The translations under genes and the position numbers were made by a program. A stretch of 64,000 nucleotides of DNA from Dimorphilus gyrociliatus (lineage: Eukaryota; Animalia; Annelida): contig CAJFCJ010000029.1 of assembly GCA_904063045.1 (NCBI GenBank), positions 434,001-498,000 of the forward strand, in the 5' to 3' direction. How positions within the stretch are numbered: the stretch's first letter is position 1; the number at the start of each line of letters is the position of its first letter. Below the pieces are notes generated by a model. It worked only from the letters and a program-made list of their open reading frames with translations, searched no databases and was not told the DNA's origin. Positions 6,765 to 61,383 of this stretch are shown piece by piece.

Positions 6765-9336
6765 CCTAGTAAAGTTAAAGAGTTGATACTTTCAAATATA
6801 AGACTCACAAGAGAAGGTTGTCATATATTTTCCTTGGGAAATATTTCTTTACTTGTTTTAAACCAATTTTTCTATTTAATTAAAAGTTAAACATTAATAT
6901 GTTTTAATTAAATTAATTTTTTACAATAAATCGATAGTCAATATGTGTTTTTTGCTTGTCATTTTCCTTTTCTCACACATTTATTTGCAATTTAATGCTA
7001 GTTCTGTATGAAATGTTATGTTTTACAAAAAGTGTTTGTTGTAAAATAATTTATGTTTAAACACTTCTATGCTGAAGAAAGATAATAAGCTACCGCCATC
7101 TATCTTCTTATAATGAATTAATTATAAATCAGGATACCTCTATGCATGGTATTTATTTTCAGAAAAAATTCTTTATTTATTAAGGATGCAAATGAATAGA
7201 CAGGATTGAAAAGTACATATAGCTTTGTTTGTTTATAGAGACTCTGAAATTTTTTAGGAAACTTGGAGTTGTATAACGATTCTAAGACGTACTCTTCATT
7301 GAATCCAATTTTCATACAATTTTGCAATTCAAAGGTTATCATTTATAAGATGGATACTGTTGGAATACTGTCACTGGAATGCTAAATACAAAATATCTAT
7401 TTTGTTATTTTGTCAGAAAAACTGGAGATATAAGTCAATTCCAGTGGTCAAAAAACTTTCTTTTTGCGATGTTGTTTCATTGGAGAGCCCCAATTGAAAC
7501 CGTAGTTCTAAAAAAGTATTTGAGCTAATCACGAATATCTACAATAAACAAAATATAATTACTACCTAAAATTTGTTATCTATTCAGTCATAAAAATCAT
7601 AAAATACCCTAAGCTGATTGGCTAAACTACATAAACTATTACTTAACATTGTGGGAGCTTAGTGTTTAGGCAATACTAGTAGATTCGCCTACCACGGCTC
7701 TCTTATATTAATTTATTTATTGTATGTACAACTATATATACTGTATATAGCTTAGTGAATTACGACGATTTTCCTATTCAGTTATAACTATAGTCATAAT
7801 AACGTTAATGTTTTAGTTATTGAATAGCTTAAAGAAAAAATATTATTAATGTTTGCAATAAAAACTAATTCATATAATAATGAAAAGACTAAGATTTTAA
7901 TTACTATTCCATTATTTTCTTCCCCAGGCGGTTTATGCTTAATTTTAAGGCGTCATTAGTACTTTTAAAAAAAAGGATAGCTAGATTTTCGTCCTTTATT
8001 TAGCTCATTGATTGAGGTACAGAATAGCGAAACGAGATAATTTAACTAGTCATTGTATAGTAATTTAAGCAAGAAATAGAAAGAAGATATCAGCAATTTT
8101 TGTCTAAATTAAAATAAGAAAAATATATGCTGTACCAATTTCATTTTTGACATTTACTGAGATCTTTCATAGGTTTCATTAAATATTTATATATATTCTA
8201 AACATCTAAGTAAAATTTGAATAGAAAGATCACCAGTATCATCTTTATTCTAAGCTAACGATAGCTTGTCAATATATCAAATATTTGCAAAATAGATAAT
8301 AACATCCGTCTTATAAATTCTGTGTTTTTTTAAAGCGAAATGGCTTCTATAAATAGCAAAATGTTTATTTTTAGTTCTTTTATAATTTACATCTACATCT
8401 TTTTTGTATATATTGTATATAGTGTATATAATATTTACAAGATCGCTAAATATCGTATAAACAATATTTTAAAGTGTAAGTTATTGAATATATCAACATA
8501 TATACATGTATATATAACTTTGAGTTCATTCATTTTTATTTCATGTATATACTTAATTAGTGCAAATTTAAGCTTCATAATTATTACTCTTTGTCTTTTT
8601 TGTCTTTTTTATCCTTCACTAAAATTTATAGAAATCAAAACTTTTATATAATAATAAAGATTTTATCCGTTATATCTAGAGCTAAAACACTGTGTATTGA
8701 ATGATTTGTTTTAATTGATTAATACGCATTTTTCAGCAACAGAAGCTACTCGGAGTTTATTTTTTAATAGAAGCGATAAAAATAAAATCATTCAAGTAAT
8801 ATTAAAATTCATCGCAAAAAAATACTACAAGGATCAGAGTTGAATAGCAAAATACGATTACATTAAAGACATGAATTCAGCAACATTTGAACATTGAATA
8901 CAAAGCATTGTTTTGTTTTTCTTTTTCCTTTTGGAGTCTAAACAAAGTTAAAAGAAAAAAATTAACTGGAATTTATCTTTCAGAAAGATTCCTTGGACAT
9001 TGCAGATTGAAGAAGAAAAGAAAACATAGCAGAAAAGTATATATAAATAGAAAGAATTATTGAACTGATGACAATATCTTTTCTTCAATAAGTAGTCACA
9101 CAAAAAATACATATACAATGTAAATATATACATAGCTTTCATAAGATACTTCTGGAAAGGGGCAAGTGCGTAGAATAAAGTTTGTTTTGATTTTTTTTTA
9201 ATTTTTTTTCAAGTTTCGTTCAAGAGAATCAGAAAAATCCTTTTTTTAGTTCTTTTTTTTTTAGGTAAAAGAATGCAGGGAAAAAATTTAGCTAGAGTAT
9301 GCTTCACATCGCATTCCACAATATTTTTTAGCACTT

Positions 9337-14969: not shown

Positions 14970-15518
14970 TGACGTCCTTGACAAAAGATCACGTGACTCT
15001 TTCGATTGAGCCATCGAACGAGGTCAATAGACGCAAGTAGAATGAGCCAACTTTATCTTATTTGTTTACTTTGGACACATCGTATAGAACGTCACCCAGT
15101 TAACGACAAATTTTCTAGGCTTAGCAAAGCACACACTTATTCCGTAAAAGTTCAGGACTTAGCGTCTTATTTACTGAGTGACGTTCGTCTTTAATTTCTA
15201 GGTCAAGGAAGTTGCTAAGCGTAACTCAAACGACCGTAACGCCTCAGGCTTGATATACTTATCGCGATCATTTTTTCTACCTCTTTATTATTTCGTCTGT
15301 CGCAACTGTTACCAAGTTAGTTATAAAGCAGACGCTTTTTATCGACCTTGACGCTTTTTTAACATTTTCATCACTTGTTTACGTTGTTGAGAAAAGCATT
15401 CTGCATTTCACGGAAAGCGGTTAGAAGTTAAGGCGTATGGGAAAGAGCAGAGCGGAGTGGAAGTAAAACTGCTTAGAACCCAATATCGGCGTCACTCTTG
15501 AAAAAGGGTGTGACGTCA
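14970..15518. promoter_or_regulatory. CpG-rich block with CRE and E-box motifs upstream of the NHL gene
   Basis: TGACGTC at 14970, ATCACGTGAC at about 14988-14997, further TGACG/CGTCA half-sites and a perfect TGACGTCA at 15511-15518, in otherwise AT-rich DNA. Confidence 0.45.
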
Positions 15519-54382: not shown

Positions 54383-55504
54383 ATGAAATCCACATTTCAG
54401 CCGATAACGTCCGGTTCTCCAACTATTTGTCTTATCGGATCGAACCGAACGAACACGACGTCGGAAGAGAGGATTTATCAAGTCGTCTATAAGGCCTACA
54501 CTTACTTACTGCCCATCATTTCTTCCTTCGGACTTGTCGGCAATATTCTAAATTTGATTATTCTTACCGGAAAGCGCGTTTGTTCCTCTCTAAGAACGGG
54601 AGAACGTTCGGCCAATGCTTGTCTAGTAGCGTTAGCCGTATCTGACATGTGTTTCTGTGTATTAGCTTTTCCGGCAGCCTTCGTTCATTCGGATCATTCC
54701 TATGAATCGGCTGCGTTTCTTGCCTACTACGACGCTTACTGTCCAGGAACAATAAACTTCTTTATACTGTCGAGTACATGGCTAACCGTAGCGATGTCTG
54801 CAGAAAGATGGCTAGCTATTTGTCATCCTCTAAAATCGAGAAACGCTATCACTTTATCCAGAACCAAAGTTGTTATAGTTGTAGTTTTCGCTATTTCCGT
54901 ACTCTTCAATATACCAGTTTATTGGCGATATAAGATGAAAACGACAGTAGAGTGTGGTCGAAGTATGGTAACTGTTGCAGAGGCGAAGATCATAAGCGAC
55001 AAATTTGAACATTCCTACCGGATTGCCTGGGCAGTTTTTGGTAATATTTTCCCGTTGTTGCTGCTCCTATTGTTTAACGGCGCTTTGATGCGTCAAATCC
55101 ATAAATCATACGCGATGAGGAGATTAATGAAGAACATGACTGGGAAACGGCAATCGGAGAGTGACGCTAGTAGACGTATTACACTGACGCTTGTTTCAAT
55201 CGTCGTCATGTTCTTCATTCTCGTTGCTCCAAGTGATGTTGCTAAGCATGTCACACTGCTTGTCGAAGAAGAACTGACAATGAACTTTACATACAAAACT
55301 ATCGAATTGATTACTAACGTCATGCAGACTATCAACTTTTCCGCCAACTTTGTTCTCTATTGCATCATTAACCCGTCTTTCCGAAGAAGTATGACATCAA
55401 GATTCGGTTGCCGAGAATTCGAAACGTCAGAGATGGCTCCAACTTCTTTTAGGATGTATAATACCAATCCGAGGTCAAGGTCGACTCGTAGCCTTCTTGA
55501 CTAA
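54383..55504 (+). CDS. Class A peptide GPCR, FMRFamide/MIP(sex-peptide)-receptor-like; intronless
   Basis: FGLVGNILNLIIL, LVALAVSDM, MSAERWLAICHPLKSR, FNIPVYW and TM7 INFSANFVLYCIINPSFR. Ligand unknown. Confidence 0.85.
   Translation: MKSTFQPITSGSPTICLIGSNRTNTTSEERIYQVVYKAYTYLLPIISSFGLVGNILNLIILTGKRVCSSLRTGERSANACLVALAVSDMCFCVLAFPAAFVHSDHSYESAAFLAYYDAYCPGTINFFILSSTWLTVAMSAERWLAICHPLKSRNAITLSRTKVVIVVVFAISVLFNIPVYWRYKMKTTVECGRSMVTVAEAKIISDKFEHSYRIAWAVFGNIFPLLLLLLFNGALMRQIHKSYAMRRLMKNMTGKRQSESDASRRITLTLVSIVVMFFILVAPSDVAKHVTLLVEEELTMNFTYKTIELITNVMQTINFSANFVLYCIINPSFRRSMTSRFGCREFETSEMAPTSFRMYNTNPRSRSTRSLLD

Positions 55505-55626: not shown

Positions 55627-55632
<6 letters not shown>

Positions 55633-55665
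<33 letters not shown>
55633..55665. repeat. (GA)n microsatellite
   Basis: Perfect AG run after the GPCR stop. Confidence 0.95.
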
Positions 55666-55669
<4 letters not shown>

Positions 55670-56300
55670 AAGAGAAAGGAAGACGACAGAACAGAAAGAG
55701 TCCAATTGAAGAAAATGAACTGAAAAGACAGCTTATTCATAAAAGACGTCTAAAAATCATTTGTATAAAAAATTAGATATCTTAGGGTGTCTTTCTAGAG
55801 AGAATATTATATAATTGACTCATAGTATGGGTATAGTCAATATATTTCTTTTATATTTTTTAAATAAAGGAAAATATACAATCCATACTTTGTTGACAGG
55901 ATTTTCTCAATGATTAATTTTTAAATTGTTTGCCTGTAAACAGGAATGGAGTTTGGAAGTAAATAGATTGTTCCTCTAATATTTCGCGCATCAACGCCTT
56001 AGGCATCCCAGTTTGCACTTAAAAAATATTATACTAACTGAAAACATGAGCATAACAGTTATGCAGGAAAATAGAATAAAAATGGAAGGAAGAGGCCGGA
56101 AAATGGCTGATAAAAGCCTATTTATTACTAGTTATTTATGGTGTTAAGAAGTCCCGGTAAACTTTCAGTCGAAAATGACTACTAAAAAGTTAAATTTGAA
56201 AAGTGGATATCATTTTCTAAACGCGACTTAGTCAAGTAAAATTTACTATGAATGGCTTTTTTTTACTGAATATTGATTAACTGAATCGAATTATCCCTTA

Positions 56301-56454
56301 TGACGGCTTAATACTGTCGCCAGATGTTTCCGCTGAAACCCAATAGATGGCATAGTAAATTTCATAGAGGCGGAGCGGTTTGAAGTCACGTGGCATTGAC
56401 GTCAGAATGACAATCTGCTGACGTAGTTGCTAGGCCGAATTCCAATCGGTGACG
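56301..56454. promoter_or_regulatory. CRE/E-box/CCAAT cluster upstream of the short CREB gene
   Basis: TGACG at 56301, CACGTG at 56387-56392, perfect TGACGTCA at 56397-56404, TGACGTA at 56419, CCAAT at 56442 and TGACG at 56450. Confidence 0.6.
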
Positions 56455-56774
56455 CGAATTATTAAACTGGCACCGTATTCCAATTTTATTTGAAAGGCTT
56501 TTTTATGGTTCGGAAAGTGGTGGACTACAAATTTGCATAGGCCGACACGTATGGCATATGTGCTTTTTCGAAATTTAGGAGAGATTCATTGTCTTTATGG
56601 AAGAAAAGTCTGCAGCTGTTGAACGAAAATAAGAGTTTCTATTGTTACTTAAACATCAACTAAGCTGTTTTAACTGCTTCCGCATCAAGGTAGTACATTT
56701 TAAAGAAGAATCAGTCGATTAAAAGAAGAGAGGTTGATAGTAATCTGTTCTTTATACAACTTCATACTATCACA

Positions 56775-57134
56775 ATGACCAATTCAGCATCTACGCAAAA
56801 TTCAACATCGAATCCAACCATTCTTCAGTACGCTCCGAACGGTGAGGGGCAATTTTTCATTCCTGTTAGTGTCGCCGTTACGAACCAACAGCCTTATCAA
56901 ACGGCAACCACACTACTGCAAGAGAACACTGGTGTTCATGAGGAATCAAATAAGAAGAGAGAACTTCGTCTGTTAAAGAATCGCGAAGCTGCTAGGGAAT
57001 GTCGGCGGAAGAAGAAGGAATATGTAAAATGTTTAGAAAATCGTGTAGCTGTTTTGGAAAATCAGAACAAAGCTTTGATAGAAGAATTAAAGAGTTTGAA
57101 AGAAATTTATGGAGACAAAGAAGAAATTGTGTGA
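56775..57134 (+). CDS. CREB-like: Short CREB/CREM/ATF1-family bZIP protein (119 aa) lacking the KID; intronless
   Basis: KRELRLLKNREAARECRRKKKEYVKCLENRVAVLENQNKALIEELKSLK is the CREB1/CREM bZIP; TILQYA..GQFFIP is a Q2-domain remnant. There is no RRPSY motif. Confidence 0.9.
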   Translation: MTNSASTQNSTSNPTILQYAPNGEGQFFIPVSVAVTNQQPYQTATTLLQENTGVHEESNKKRELRLLKNREAARECRRKKKEYVKCLENRVAVLENQNKALIEELKSLKEIYGDKEEIV

Positions 57135-57860
57135 TTGTTAAGTGTTTATTAAATGAATTAATTGAAGATAATGAACAAAAGTGTACAAATTGGTGCTCAA
57201 TTGTGATTGAAAGCTATTCAATACAAGATATGTTGCTGAGATTAAGAAAAAAATGTACAAACAATCAGAAGTATAATCGTTTAAGACATTCTTAAAATGA
57301 TAAATAAGAAATTCTTAAAGAAATATGAAAAACATCCCCCAATAAAATTATACAACTAACTACTATTTACTTTCTTCTATTCAATTTAAATGCATTAATT
57401 ATCATAACTACCAATTTAAACAATCTTATAACTAATTACTGTGTTAACCGCAACAAATAAGCATTGCAAATACAGAATAAAGAAGAGAAGAATTCTAGAA
57501 ATATACTAGGCAGACTACCTAATCAATTACGTATATTAGTGTATATTATTTATTGTTCATTTAAAAACAATGTTCAATTAATATTGACATTTAGGAGGGT
57601 TAGAATATTCGGAAATTAAACTCAGTTTACAAGAGTAAACTTATCTTACTTAAGGAATTTTTAGGATTATATTTTCTTCATTCCTTCATAATGCAATCAG
57701 CTTTAACCTTAAGAAATGTAGAATTCTTTATGTAAGAGTTTTCTTAGTTTGTCATTCATTAGAATTAAATAAACTTCAAAAGATAAACTTTCTAGTTTAG
57801 GAAATCTTTCATTTTCGCTTCTCTCAATTTTCGAAAGAGTAATAGTTGGGGACGAAGTTG

Positions 57861-57957
57861 ATTGGTTGACAAACACGTGACGTTGAACTCTGAGCCTATA
57901 AGTAAAGCGTTACTTCCTCGGTTCCTGAATCAGAAGATATTACAAATAAAGGTAAGT
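57861..57957 (+). promoter_or_regulatory. Putative PDF promoter and non-coding first exon
   Basis: ATTGG at 57861, CACGTGACGT at 57874-57883, TATAAG at about 57897 and strong donor AG|GTAAGT at 57952, pairing with acceptor TAATCCAG at 58691, 2 nt before the PDF ATG. Confidence 0.55.
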
Positions 57958-58693
57958 AAGACGAAGAAAAGAGCTCTGCTTAAACTTTTCTTTACTTTTT
58001 ATTGTTGTTTCGTTTTATCACTCTTTTATTTTCCTTTTCTTTAAATATTTATAGCTTGAATGTTTTATATCGGAGAGACAGACAACAATTCAGCGAAGCC
58101 CTTTTCAAAATGTCTCCAAACAAAGAGACTTATAAATATTTTGTTAAATCAAGAGAGTAAATTAAAATAGTTTACAGCAATGAATACATATACATATTGT
58201 ATATGCTGTATAGATATATAGATATAGGTTCATACGTATTTAACTAGATGCTTAGTTTCTTAATTAAACAAAGTTGTGCATATGTTTTAAATTCAATGTG
58301 TATATTCATATAAGACTTGATAGAAGACTAAAGAAAATTTACGATACATCAGTATATGTTATATATAGAGGTGTATGCTTTTAAAACATATACACCTCTT
58401 GGAAGAGAGGAAGAAAAAAGTATTGCTACTTTGTAGCTAGAAACGGTTATGCTCCTTTATTCTATAAATATTTCCTGCACTTAATTTTTCTTTACCCTAA
58501 CAATATTGCCCCCTTTTATCAGAGGCACCTCTTAATGAAAAAGTCAATAAGTTAGTATAGGAGAAATAGCAGGTCGCAGAACAGATATAAGGTATAAGTC
58601 CTGCCTAAGCTGATGCACCTTTGTTTGACAAGCGCCTTTGGCAGACTAGTACTTGATGACGTAACGTAATCTTCTCGTATTCTTAATCCAGAT

Positions 58694-59067
58694 ATGGCAT
58701 ACGTTATTCGCTCGCTTTTCCTCATCGTACTCTTAGTCAACGGTCTTTTCGTCAATGCCGAAAACACTCAATCAAAGATGGTGGACGGTTTTTCACCAAA
58801 GACGGCACTGGTAAGTCTTCCTGTCGATTATGAGTGAAACCTTTAAAAAGAATGCTTCAATTTCGAGACGCTATTGTTTTTGACAAACCCCTCGCTTCTG
58901 GGTGTTAATTTGCTTTTGTATTTTCTCAGCAACTGGCTGCTATAGGAAGAAGATTACTAAGAATAGCTGCTGAAATGAGAGGCGACGTTGATGCCAAGAA
59001 GAGGAATTCTGGTATGCTCGATGCTCTAATAAATATTCCCGACTTTTTCAATTCTGGCCGTCGTTAA
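58694..59067 (+). CDS. PDF: Pigment-dispersing factor (PDF/cerebrin-type) neuropeptide precursor; exons 58694-58810 and 58930-59067, 84 aa
   Basis: Not in the ORF track. Translates as MAYVIRSLFLIVLLVNGLFVNA-ENTQSKMVDGFSPKTAL|QLAAIGRRLLRIAAEMRGDVDA-KKR-NSGMLDALINIPDFFNS-GRR-stop: signal peptide, basic cleavage site, 17-aa PDF-like peptide and amidation Gly. Confidence 0.9.
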
Positions 59068-61383
59068 ATAACGAAAAAGAAAAATGAAAAGTTTTTGAAA
59101 AAGAACTTTATCTGATCTCCAACTTTGAATGAGACTATTTAATGTCAATGAAATAAAATTTATCAGATCGAAATACATACAGAATCTTATCCAAGTTTTT
59201 CCCAAATATTTAAACAATCAGTTCAATAGATAACTAATAAACTGAAGAAAACTGAATCTATTCTAATCTCTCTTTACACTTCCTATAGTGTACTTTAAAC
59301 AAATTCGTTTTTATATAAAAATCTTTTCTCTCTTCTGTATTTTCCACTTGTTATCTATACACATACATACATGTACACATGTACTCTCTCTCTCTCTCTC
59401 TTTCTTTTTCTTCAATCTAACAATTTTCTTTTCTTATGAAAAGCAAGAGACAAAATAAAGCATAAGCGTAGATATTTCTCTAAGTTAACAAATATGGAGA
59501 ATATATAGAATATATATATATTTTAGGTTTAGAATATATTTTTTGATGCTCCGAATTAAGCTCTCAATCCCAGGGGACAATAGTTCGTAAATTTGAAGAG
59601 AAATGCAATCATTTCGGTAGGCATGTTTAGAAGTCTGAGTTTTCGGTTTGTTAATTGTTATATTGAAGGTTAAATTATATCCAAGAACTCATTTTATATG
59701 ATGAGTGATTAGCTCTTGTTCCTCTTTACTTATTATGGATCTCTTATGCTGTCTCACACAATGTAACTCGAAACTGTACAATAACAAAGAAAAAGTGGTA
59801 AATGATTAGCTTTCTTTATTTTCTTTTTCATGTGAATAATGGAACATCGATTAATTAGAATTGTATGTAAAATATTCAACTGTAGTAAGCTTTCAGGTTG
59901 GTTTTGTTAATAATCAGGTTTACTATTCCTCCATATAAAACGAAGGTTGTTGTTTGAAAATACTTTATATACTGTACATAAACTATTTTTAATAAAACAA
60001 AAAGCCTGTATTTTTCCATTTCTCTTAAGAATAACAAGTTAAGTGTACTGAAAAAAACGATTTGTATGATATTTTATATTCGTACGAATATAGAATATCA
60101 GAATATCTTAATCGCGTATATTAGTAATATTTTTAGTTTAGTAAAAGTACTCTAATCAATCTAAAATATACAGTCTACGGTTTGTCGTGAAGTTTTTTCG
60201 CGTGCCTGAAGACGCTATAATGCTATTGAAACCTTCATTACAGTTTTATTTCTTCACTAGCAAATTTAACCAGCGGTAAATTTAAGTTAGTATGGCTTAC
60301 TTTTATTTTCCTGGCTAACAGTTTTGGTATATATGGAATCATATGCATAATATTACATTATTCTACATTGGAATAGGTTTAATGAACTTTTTTCTACTTT
60401 ATCTTTACTGTATATTTTCTTAATCGATTTGTTGTTCACTCGTTCATTTCTGCTCTTTATTCTCCTTTTCTCTCCAATCATTTTTCTTTGATATATGCCC
60501 TTAACTTTCTTTCTAGAGGTGAAAAATTTCCTATGTTGGCAAGTATTCTTCTTTTCTATAAAAGCTAATCATCTTCATTTTTCCTATTAAGTAACGTTTC
60601 CTTATAGTATTTTCGTACATCTATGTCACAAAAATGTCATTTTAACCGTGGAATAAAACTTGTAGCCACAAGACATTTACCCTGGATATAAGACCTGTAA
60701 TAATTCGTAGTATTTAAGAGTTATAACACTTTATAAAATAATAAAAGAGGCGTCTATTATTCTTTAAAAAGTTTTTCAACATAATTATAAACCTTATCAT
60801 AGTCAAAAGTTTTCAAGAGCTTAATAATTCAAATGAAATTTTGTTAATAGTGAGAAATTCTTCAAAGGATGGTCTGACGTGCTGTAGTGCTGGTATAAAT
60901 TTTTCGTTTGATTCATCAAATTCGCCACCTAGCGACAGAAATTTACTTATTATTTCCCTTCCTGATTGCTGAACTAGTTCGACGCTGATATAATAAAAAC
61001 AATAAAAACATCAAGTCAAGATTTCCCAATAGAACATTTGAAAACGCCAAAGAGATGAACTTTGAAAAATATTTATGAATGAACCATTTAGTCAAATAAA
61101 CATTTCGTTATCTTATTGAGTTGTTTACTATTGGAAACATACAAATATTAAGAGTAACATACTCTGTTGACTAGTTTTCATTTCATTTATTATACCTATA
61201 TTTTTAAGAAACAGTGCAAAATGATCTAAATATTTATTATGATCATACAGGCACAATCCTATTTTATGCTTTCTTCTTTTTTCTTCATATTTGTTCATTG
61301 AAATATTAGAAAAATATATAAATTAAGCTGAGGAATTATAGCAACGACACGAGTTTTAATTCGAACCGTTGTCAGTCTGAAAT

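Follow-up and report, generated by a model that had tools for sequence, protein, structure and literature searches.

A separate, transcribed gene for a KID-less CREB behind a conserved cluster of CREs in the annelid Dimorphilus gyrociliatus

We hold with moderate confidence that a short CREB gene of the annelid Dimorphilus gyrociliatus is a stand-alone, truncated paralogue of CREB, that it is transcribed from a promoter containing a cluster of CREs, and that it is likely to take part, as we infer from its domain content and its promoter, in a CREB-driven feedback for which a negative sign is favoured. The gene occupies positions 56775-57134 on the plus strand of the window, by which we mean the whole 64,000-nucleotide stretch of contig CAJFCJ010000029.1 (assembly GCA_904063045.1) that was analysed, and its open reading frame encodes a CREB-type bZIP protein of 119 amino acids (P0001), the exact sequence of which was found encoded on this contig. 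The database record lists the protein merely as an unnamed product, which the present analysis corrects. In our literature search, no description of the short gene was found, and the only mentions related to CREB in D. gyrociliatus were those of CREBBP/EP300.

What remains of CREB in such a small protein? Residues 1-57 are a remnant of the distal Q2 region, and residues 58-119 constitute the bZIP part, in which Pfam and the alignment place the bZIP domain at residues 59-113 (56949-57113, plus strand). The Pfam score for bZIP_1 is 67.1 bits, and a match to pKID is absent. The CREB-type basic region KNREAARECRRKKKEY and the zipper, by which members of the CREB/CREM/ATF1 subfamily are recognized, are both present; a KID with RRPSY, another mark of this subfamily, is lacking in P0001, and known isoforms without a KID are nevertheless included in the family. 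Residues 67-99 are exactly those of human CREB1 (solved chains 5zko, 5zk1, and 1dh3), and inside this identical stretch lie R77 and R90, which correspond to R301 and R314 of human CREB1, the former involved in DNA binding and the latter contacting CRTC and needed for CRTC binding (PMC11773003). On the amino-terminal side, the Q2 signature LTMTN...TI(V/L)QYA...GQFFIP is represented by the distal part of Q2 only. Its most conserved core, TILQYA...GQFFIPV, is kept, and the protein has neither Q1 nor a KID, the domain that carries the PKA site RRPSY. In an alignment of annelid, mollusc, brachiopod, and vertebrate CREBs (A3), M1, N3, I16, Q18, Y19, A20, G25, Q26, and P30 of P0001 are invariant, and the initiator methionine of the short gene is itself the invariant methionine of the LTM(T/S)N motif within Q2.

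The missing KID is not hidden elsewhere in the neighbourhood. A scan of all six frames of the 64-kb window for RRPSY-type motifs gave none, and when the full-length CREB of the same species (P0121, described below) was compared with the window by tblastn, only its residues 109-232 found a match and nothing was obtained for residues 1-108. The preceding GPCR open reading frame stops at 55504, which leaves a distance of 1,271 nt to the ATG, and in-frame stops 5' of the ATG are located at 56661 and 56691 (TAG at 56691-56693). A reading made from the sequence only had described a 119-residue frame with a CREB bZIP and a Q2 remnant and without Q1 or KID, an in-frame stop at 56691, and a distance of 1.27 kb back to the GPCR stop in which no KID exon was seen; the open reading frame, the Pfam search, and the alignment bear this description out, and the motif scan and the tblastn search extend the absence of a KID to the whole window. 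Homology to CREB does continue for about 15 nt 5' of the ATG, where LHTIT stands before MTN (56760-56774, plus strand). This is the point at which the tblastn and blastn homology to P0121 starts, and the 12 codons 5' of the ATG, reading ...LFFIQLHTIT, resemble ...HIQL...VQTIT of P0121. By eye, 5 of these 12 codons differ between the window and the corresponding contig L001 of a close relative (alignment A1), and therefore 56760-56774 is taken as a relic of ancestral Q2 coding sequence that has lost its coding constraint and has become 5'UTR. A 155-aa version of the protein (P0003) appeared as a candidate for an N-terminal extension; it begins with a GTG start proposed by a bacterial-style gene caller, the codons 5' of the ATG lack coding constraint, and it was rejected as an artefact.

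The short gene is transcribed as a unit of its own. When RNA contigs from four runs were placed on positions 55700-59400 of the window, record 2 of run X1 (780 nt) covered 56562-57340 at 98% identity, record 8 of run X3 (266 nt) covered 56579-56844 at 100% identity, and record 17 of run X8, which comes from a relative (797 nt, depth 414), covered 56546-57319 at about 90% identity before passing into a run of A. Contigs of these three independent runs are collinear with the gene and show no joints, and since their first letters all lie on the genome, neither a spliced leader nor an upstream exon is present. The downstream neuropeptide gene has a 119-nt GT..AG intron, which is removed by splicing in all four runs, and the flanks at 55700-56195 and 57684-57931 have zero RNA depth; thus, the signal over the short gene comes from RNA and not from DNA carry-over. 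Because the contigs are collinear and unspliced and one of them ends in poly(A), the product is a stand-alone, polyadenylated, single-exon mRNA of about 780 nt rather than the final exon of some larger gene. The sequence-only reading had predicted a separate gene whose transcript begins between 56460 and 56775, and the contigs, starting at 56546 (X8), 56562 (X1), and 56579 (X3), agree with it. The zone 56546-56579 on the plus strand is accordingly used here for the transcription start, for which contig ends are a mere approximation. A low-depth contig (X1 record 1, 56275-56522, depth 2.6) covers the CRE cluster itself, and could reflect a minor upstream start or DNA carry-over.

The 5'UTR (56546-56774, plus strand) is unspliced and about 200-230 nt long, and its first 100 nt or so are conserved at 89% and the remainder at 68%. 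A mini-intron at 56688-56743 was considered because a GT...AG pair is conserved there, yet contigs from three runs pass straight through it. An upstream open reading frame of 11 codons (MEEKSAAVERK*, 56597-56632, plus strand) was recognized from the sequence, the alignment with L001, and the differences listed for X8; its start, stop, and length are retained in L001, and X8 lists no change at either the start or the stop, while the peptide varies. Twelve nucleotides around the ATG of this small frame are those around the start codon of P0121, an identity that is suggestive only and may be due to chance (BLAST E = 6.5). The 3'UTR (57135-57340, plus strand) contains a stretch of 57 nt, at about 57180-57235, that is invariant in comparison with L001. 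The transcript ends around 57320-57340. Two sequences, AATAAG at 57303 and AATAAA at 57341, are candidates for its poly(A) signal.

The coding sequence is kept under constraint. Comparison of the window with L001 gave dS = 0.90, dN = 0.070, and omega = 0.078, and by part omega is 0.11 in the Q2 remnant and 0.047 in the bZIP. Contigs L001-L003 of the close relative show collinearity with the window from a flavin-monooxygenase-like gene through the GPCR gene and the bZIP gene to the neuropeptide gene, and in a third lineage (P0002) the GPCR gene is likewise followed by the bZIP gene. The short CREB gene is thus expressed and under strong purifying selection, and for these two reasons it is not a pseudogene.

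Upstream of the transcript lies a compact array of motifs, the cores of which are all identical in L001 at a synonymous divergence of about 0.9. It consists of a distal TGACG half-site (56301-56305, plus strand, within TGACGG), a CCAAT box (56340-56344, plus strand), a palindromic E-box CACGTG (56387-56392) that ends 4 nt before a perfect palindromic CRE, TGACGTCA (56397-56404), a CRE-like site matching in seven of eight positions, TGACGTAG (56419-56426, plus strand), and a CRE half-site, TGACGCGA (56450-56457, plus strand); a second CCAAT, at 56442, is not conserved in L001. Relative to the transcript ends, the E-box, the perfect CRE, and the two CRE-like sites are situated about 90-160 nt upstream, and the distal half-site about 245 nt upstream. 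An octamer, ATTTGCAT (56531-56538, plus strand), follows in an AT-rich stretch 8-30 nt 5' of the transcript ends; it is also conserved in L001 and could act as an octamer or as a TATA-like core element. A perfect CRE with three TGACG half-sites, an E-box, and a CCAAT had been noticed on first reading, and each of these was found again in its place. The perfect CRE occurs twice in the 64-kb window against 0.53 expected, and the four TGACG matches within 60 nt form the densest cluster of the window, a density reached in 0.3% of 300 Markov-simulated windows. Clustering of TGACG upstream of the short gene therefore exceeds chance. The other perfect CRE, TGACGTCA, is found at 15490-15518, with a further TGACG 17 nt upstream of it.

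Conservation is not confined to these motifs. The sequence from 55760 to 56650 is about 88-97% identical to L001, in comparison with only about 55% in neutral sequence downstream of the gene. Within it, a non-coding block of about 250 nt (55895-56150), about 97% identical to L001 between neutral flanks of about 55%, is more conserved than the neighbouring coding sequences and holds no CRE. An RNA gene was considered for this block and rejected, as there is no Rfam match, RNA depth is zero in four runs, and folding on both strands is no stronger than that of shuffled sequences. The block probably regulates either the short CREB gene or the GPCR gene from a distance, and is possibly a distal enhancer. 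A (GA)n microsatellite lies just 3' of the GPCR gene at 55630-55672, and the sequence of the relative cannot be aligned across it.

Where did the short gene come from? A separate full-length CREB with a KID, for which the sequence-only reading had proposed a search, does exist: P0121, of 232 amino acids, is encoded on CAJFCJ010000007.1 of the same assembly, and its pKID, including RRPSY, scores 46.5 bits in Pfam. P0001 is 68-70% identical to P0121 over the shared 118-125 residues, and the two genes are 68% identical in nucleotides over 56763-57124. The short proteins and P0121 are both without the LPQGVVM segment and both have NKALIEELK, and maximum-likelihood analysis unites the three short proteins (100/99), with P0121 as their sister (93/79). 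From the tree and from this shared deletion and shared motif it follows that the short gene is a duplicated and truncated copy of the CREB of its own lineage. P0121 differs from the short protein by its 113 additional N-terminal residues, including the pKID, and by its chromosomal neighbourhood, and is like it in the lineage-specific deletion, in the near-identical basic region and zipper, and in an intronless coding sequence, which in P0121 is one unbroken frame of 699 nt (L004, 10001-10699). As judged by sequence comparison, the short gene is a truncated, lineage-specific paralogue of this intronless CREB.

Ancestrally, the gene must be compared with the CREBs of Owenia and Lamellibrachia, which have six coding exons with introns after FFIP and after LLKN. 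In the short gene, both positions are continuous, as in a retrogene set against its orthologues, and its detectable homology starts within ancestral exon 4. An intron-containing parent in the same genome, which a retrogene would also have, was not found, the only candidate being P0121 with its own intronless coding sequence, and no A-tract as a remnant of poly(A) was seen after the 3' end of the short gene. Retroposition, and duplication at the DNA level of a CREB that was already intronless, are equally possible origins. No ICER-like intronic cluster of CREs was found 5' of exon 4 in the CREB of Owenia or that of Lamellibrachia. Homology between the promoters of the short gene and P0121 was tried as well and rejected, the best local alignment being no better than those of shuffled sequences (p = 0.14); short strings common to both are TTTGRAGTCACGTG, ATCTGCT...TGACGTRG, and the above-mentioned 12 nt around the ATG of P0121. 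Orthologues of P0121 in close relatives were not found in the protein database, and P0121-like RNA contigs occur in runs X1 and X8.

Some observations concern P0121 and its relatives in their own right. As the main CREB, P0121 may have lost every one of its coding introns, or it may be a retrogene that took the place of an earlier CREB. Upstream of it, at 9253-9270 and 9472-9496 of L004, there are two CRE-like sites, TGACGTAG and GGACGTCA, separated by 2 nt, and an E-box GTCACGTG followed by TGACGTGG, which hint, by sequence, that the activator gene may be CRE-regulated too. Other CREB-like transcripts, in X1, X8, X3, and X5, match only the bZIP of the short gene (56955-57104) at about 81-84%; one of them is P0121-like, with a 30-nt flank equal to L004, and those ending in ...LYCQKEDGK* and ...LYCNKQE* may stem either from other organisms present in the samples or from further paralogues in relatives.

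How does such a gene compare with the KID-less CREB and CREM forms already described? The CREM P2 promoter, with its four CREs, produces ICER and is in turn repressed by it (PMC3941242). Like ICER, the short CREB is a small KID-less protein of similar size with an almost identical bZIP, is predicted to bind CREs, and has a dedicated promoter in which a tight CRE cluster near the start, conserved in the relative, would allow autoregulation as it does in ICER (PMC3941242). However, ICER belongs to the isoforms of CREM, its promoter being intronic and its mRNA being spliced and having a separate first exon, whereas the short CREB is a separate, duplicated, single-exon gene, with its own start and on another scaffold than the full-length gene; ICER has lost Q2 in addition to Q1 and KID, whereas about 45 constrained residues of distal Q2 are kept here; and the short-CREB promoter, unlike that of ICER, has the abutting CACGTG E-box and the octamer. 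S-CREM, which arises from an internal start codon (PMC4787626), is also without Q1 and KID and keeps Q2-derived sequence together with the bZIP, although it is a translational isoform of the full-length mRNA, while the truncation of the short CREB is fixed in the genome behind a promoter of its own. Since the constrained Q2 core is retained (omega 0.11), the short CREB is, by its sequence, nearer to S-CREM than to the pure ICER design. Internally initiated CREB repressors of testis, reportedly described by Walker and Habener, are again translational isoforms of a full-length mRNA, unlike the short CREB gene. Among spiralians, Aplysia CREB1b and the CREB1 repressor isoforms of Lymnaea are KID-less or repressor forms that act together with the activator (PMC11333461), but a single gene yields them through alternative splicing, in contrast to a second gene here.

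Thus, the proposal of the sequence-only reading that a separate gene has converged on the ICER design stands in part. The protein did not converge, being a duplicated and shortened form of the CREB of its own lineage, while the layout of the promoter is plausibly convergent; the anatomy of a KID-less product behind a CRE cluster holds, and the constrained Q2 remnant departs from that design. The repressor function that went with the proposal is weakened, because ICER has been reported to activate through CRTC bound to its bZIP (10.64898/2026.07.27.739364). Tentatively, and at slightly less than an even chance, the gene may be called an isoform of the ICER/S-CREM type turned into an independent gene, which would serve, from a presumably CREB-driven promoter, as a feedback or feed-forward arm and would have arisen independently of the CREM P2 arrangement of vertebrates.

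What would the short protein do in the cell? Because its basic region and zipper are nearly identical to those of P0121, it is expected to bind CREs in dimers that it forms either with itself or with P0121. A CBP/p300 orthologue has been reported in D. gyrociliatus (PMC12153100). Having no KID, the short CREB would not be switched on by phosphorylation of the KID and recruitment of CBP through KIX, and it would therefore alter the output of cAMP/CREB signalling at CRE-containing promoters. Since its own promoter combines the E-box and the perfect CRE with the two CRE-like sites about 90-160 nt upstream of the start, the gene is most likely a target of CREB, and would close a feedback loop on CRE-driven genes, itself among them, in the way that ICER does from CREM P2. 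Competition for CREs and formation of KID-less heterodimers would make the net feedback negative, the sign that we tentatively favour.

The negative sign of this proposal may be met by a different interpretation, namely that the short CREB is an activator independent of a KID, a feed-forward amplifier that recruits CRTC through its bZIP, perhaps aided by Q2, and reinforces the cAMP/CRTC response. We regard this as less likely, though far from negligible. In a 2026 preprint, ICER1 is reported to bind CRTC2 via its bZIP and to restore forskolin-induced Sik1 in Creb1/Atf1/Crem knockout cells, where it can stand in for the full-length CREB paralogues, S133 phosphorylation being largely dispensable (10.64898/2026.07.27.739364), and R90 of P0001, the equivalent of CREB R314, lies in the stretch 67-99 that is wholly identical to human CREB1. 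The same preprint, which is not peer reviewed, also finds locus-dependent repression, and S-CREM, which has Q2 sequence and no KID, is described as a repressor (PMC4787626, PMC11333461). The omega of 0.11 in the Q2 remnant speaks for an activator too, as a passive competitor would not obviously need it. The constitutive activation domain of CREB includes Q2, and with this role and the constraint on the remnant in mind, the short protein need not be a passive repressor. In run X8, the word depth of the short transcript is 414 versus 169 for the P0121-like CREB transcript, which goes in the same direction, word depth being a weak measure.

The CREB-driven feedback may also be questioned from the side of the promoter. 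If the CRE and E-box cluster serves ATF/Jun and bHLH-ZIP factors such as USF or CLOCK, the short CREB would be a constitutive CRE-binding factor of particular tissues or stages without cAMP feedback, and the likeness of its promoter to that of ICER would be superficial. Other bZIP factors (ATF, Jun) are indeed able to bind CRE-like motifs, which counts against a feedback through CREB; the CACGTG E-box abuts the CRE; and the conservation of 900 nt upstream (55760-56650), including the CRE-less block of about 250 nt at 97%, suggests that CREs are one input among several. Nevertheless, a perfect CRE with two CRE-like sites in 60 nt near the start is statistically unusual in the window, CREs clustered about 100-150 nt from the start are the classical layout of cAMP-responsive promoters, and full-length CREB is expressed in the same samples, so that we consider a purely constitutive factor improbable. 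As to the gene itself, one might suspect that the frame is just the end of a longer CREB gene that has a KID and upstream exons at some other place, or else a dead processed pseudogene; upstream KID exons and a lack of expression were both among the outcomes by which the sequence-only reading would have been overturned. The CREB homology of about 15 nt 5' of the ATG, the conserved GT...AG pair at 56688-56743, and the lack of introns as in retrocopies would suit such views. They are contradicted by the transcripts of three runs, which are collinear through 56546-56775 and carry no other sequence at their 5' ends, by the in-frame stops at 56661 and 56691 and the absence of a KID in 64 kb, by a dN/dS of 0.078 at a dS of 0.9 together with high word depth, and by synteny kept in at least two other lineages; we give them hardly any credence.

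A truncated CREB of the type known as isoforms in vertebrates, ICER and S-CREM, is thus a gene of its own in D. gyrociliatus. KID-less forms of CREB and CREM are central to the shut-off or, as is now argued, the amplification of cAMP-driven transcription, and those described in vertebrates, Aplysia, Lymnaea, and Drosophila are isoforms nested in the gene for the activator, which makes clean genetics difficult. D. gyrociliatus is a miniature annelid with a compact genome, is already studied by other groups, and has a single full-length CREB beside the short gene. If the CREB-driven feedback proposed here is true, the feedback or feed-forward arm would be genetically separable, and a knock-out could remove it while leaving the activator intact, an experiment that is difficult in vertebrates. 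Does a bZIP protein that has a Q2 remnant but no KID repress, or does it activate in dependence on CRTC? Do promoters with CRE clusters evolve recurrently together with KID-less proteins? By which route does an isoform become a gene? The short CREB gene would offer a natural system for asking all three.

Two further observations were made in passing. In the CREB locus of Owenia fusiformis (L006), the last bZIP exon is present in tandem, at 8220-8372 and 8722-8856, the two copies matching the same residues at 94% and 91%, an arrangement that recalls the two alternative exons for the DNA-binding domain in vertebrate CREM. Downstream of the short CREB gene, a PDF/cerebrin-like neuropeptide gene at 58690-59191 is transcribed, with 58809 joined to 58929 by splicing in all four runs and a depth of 387 in X8.
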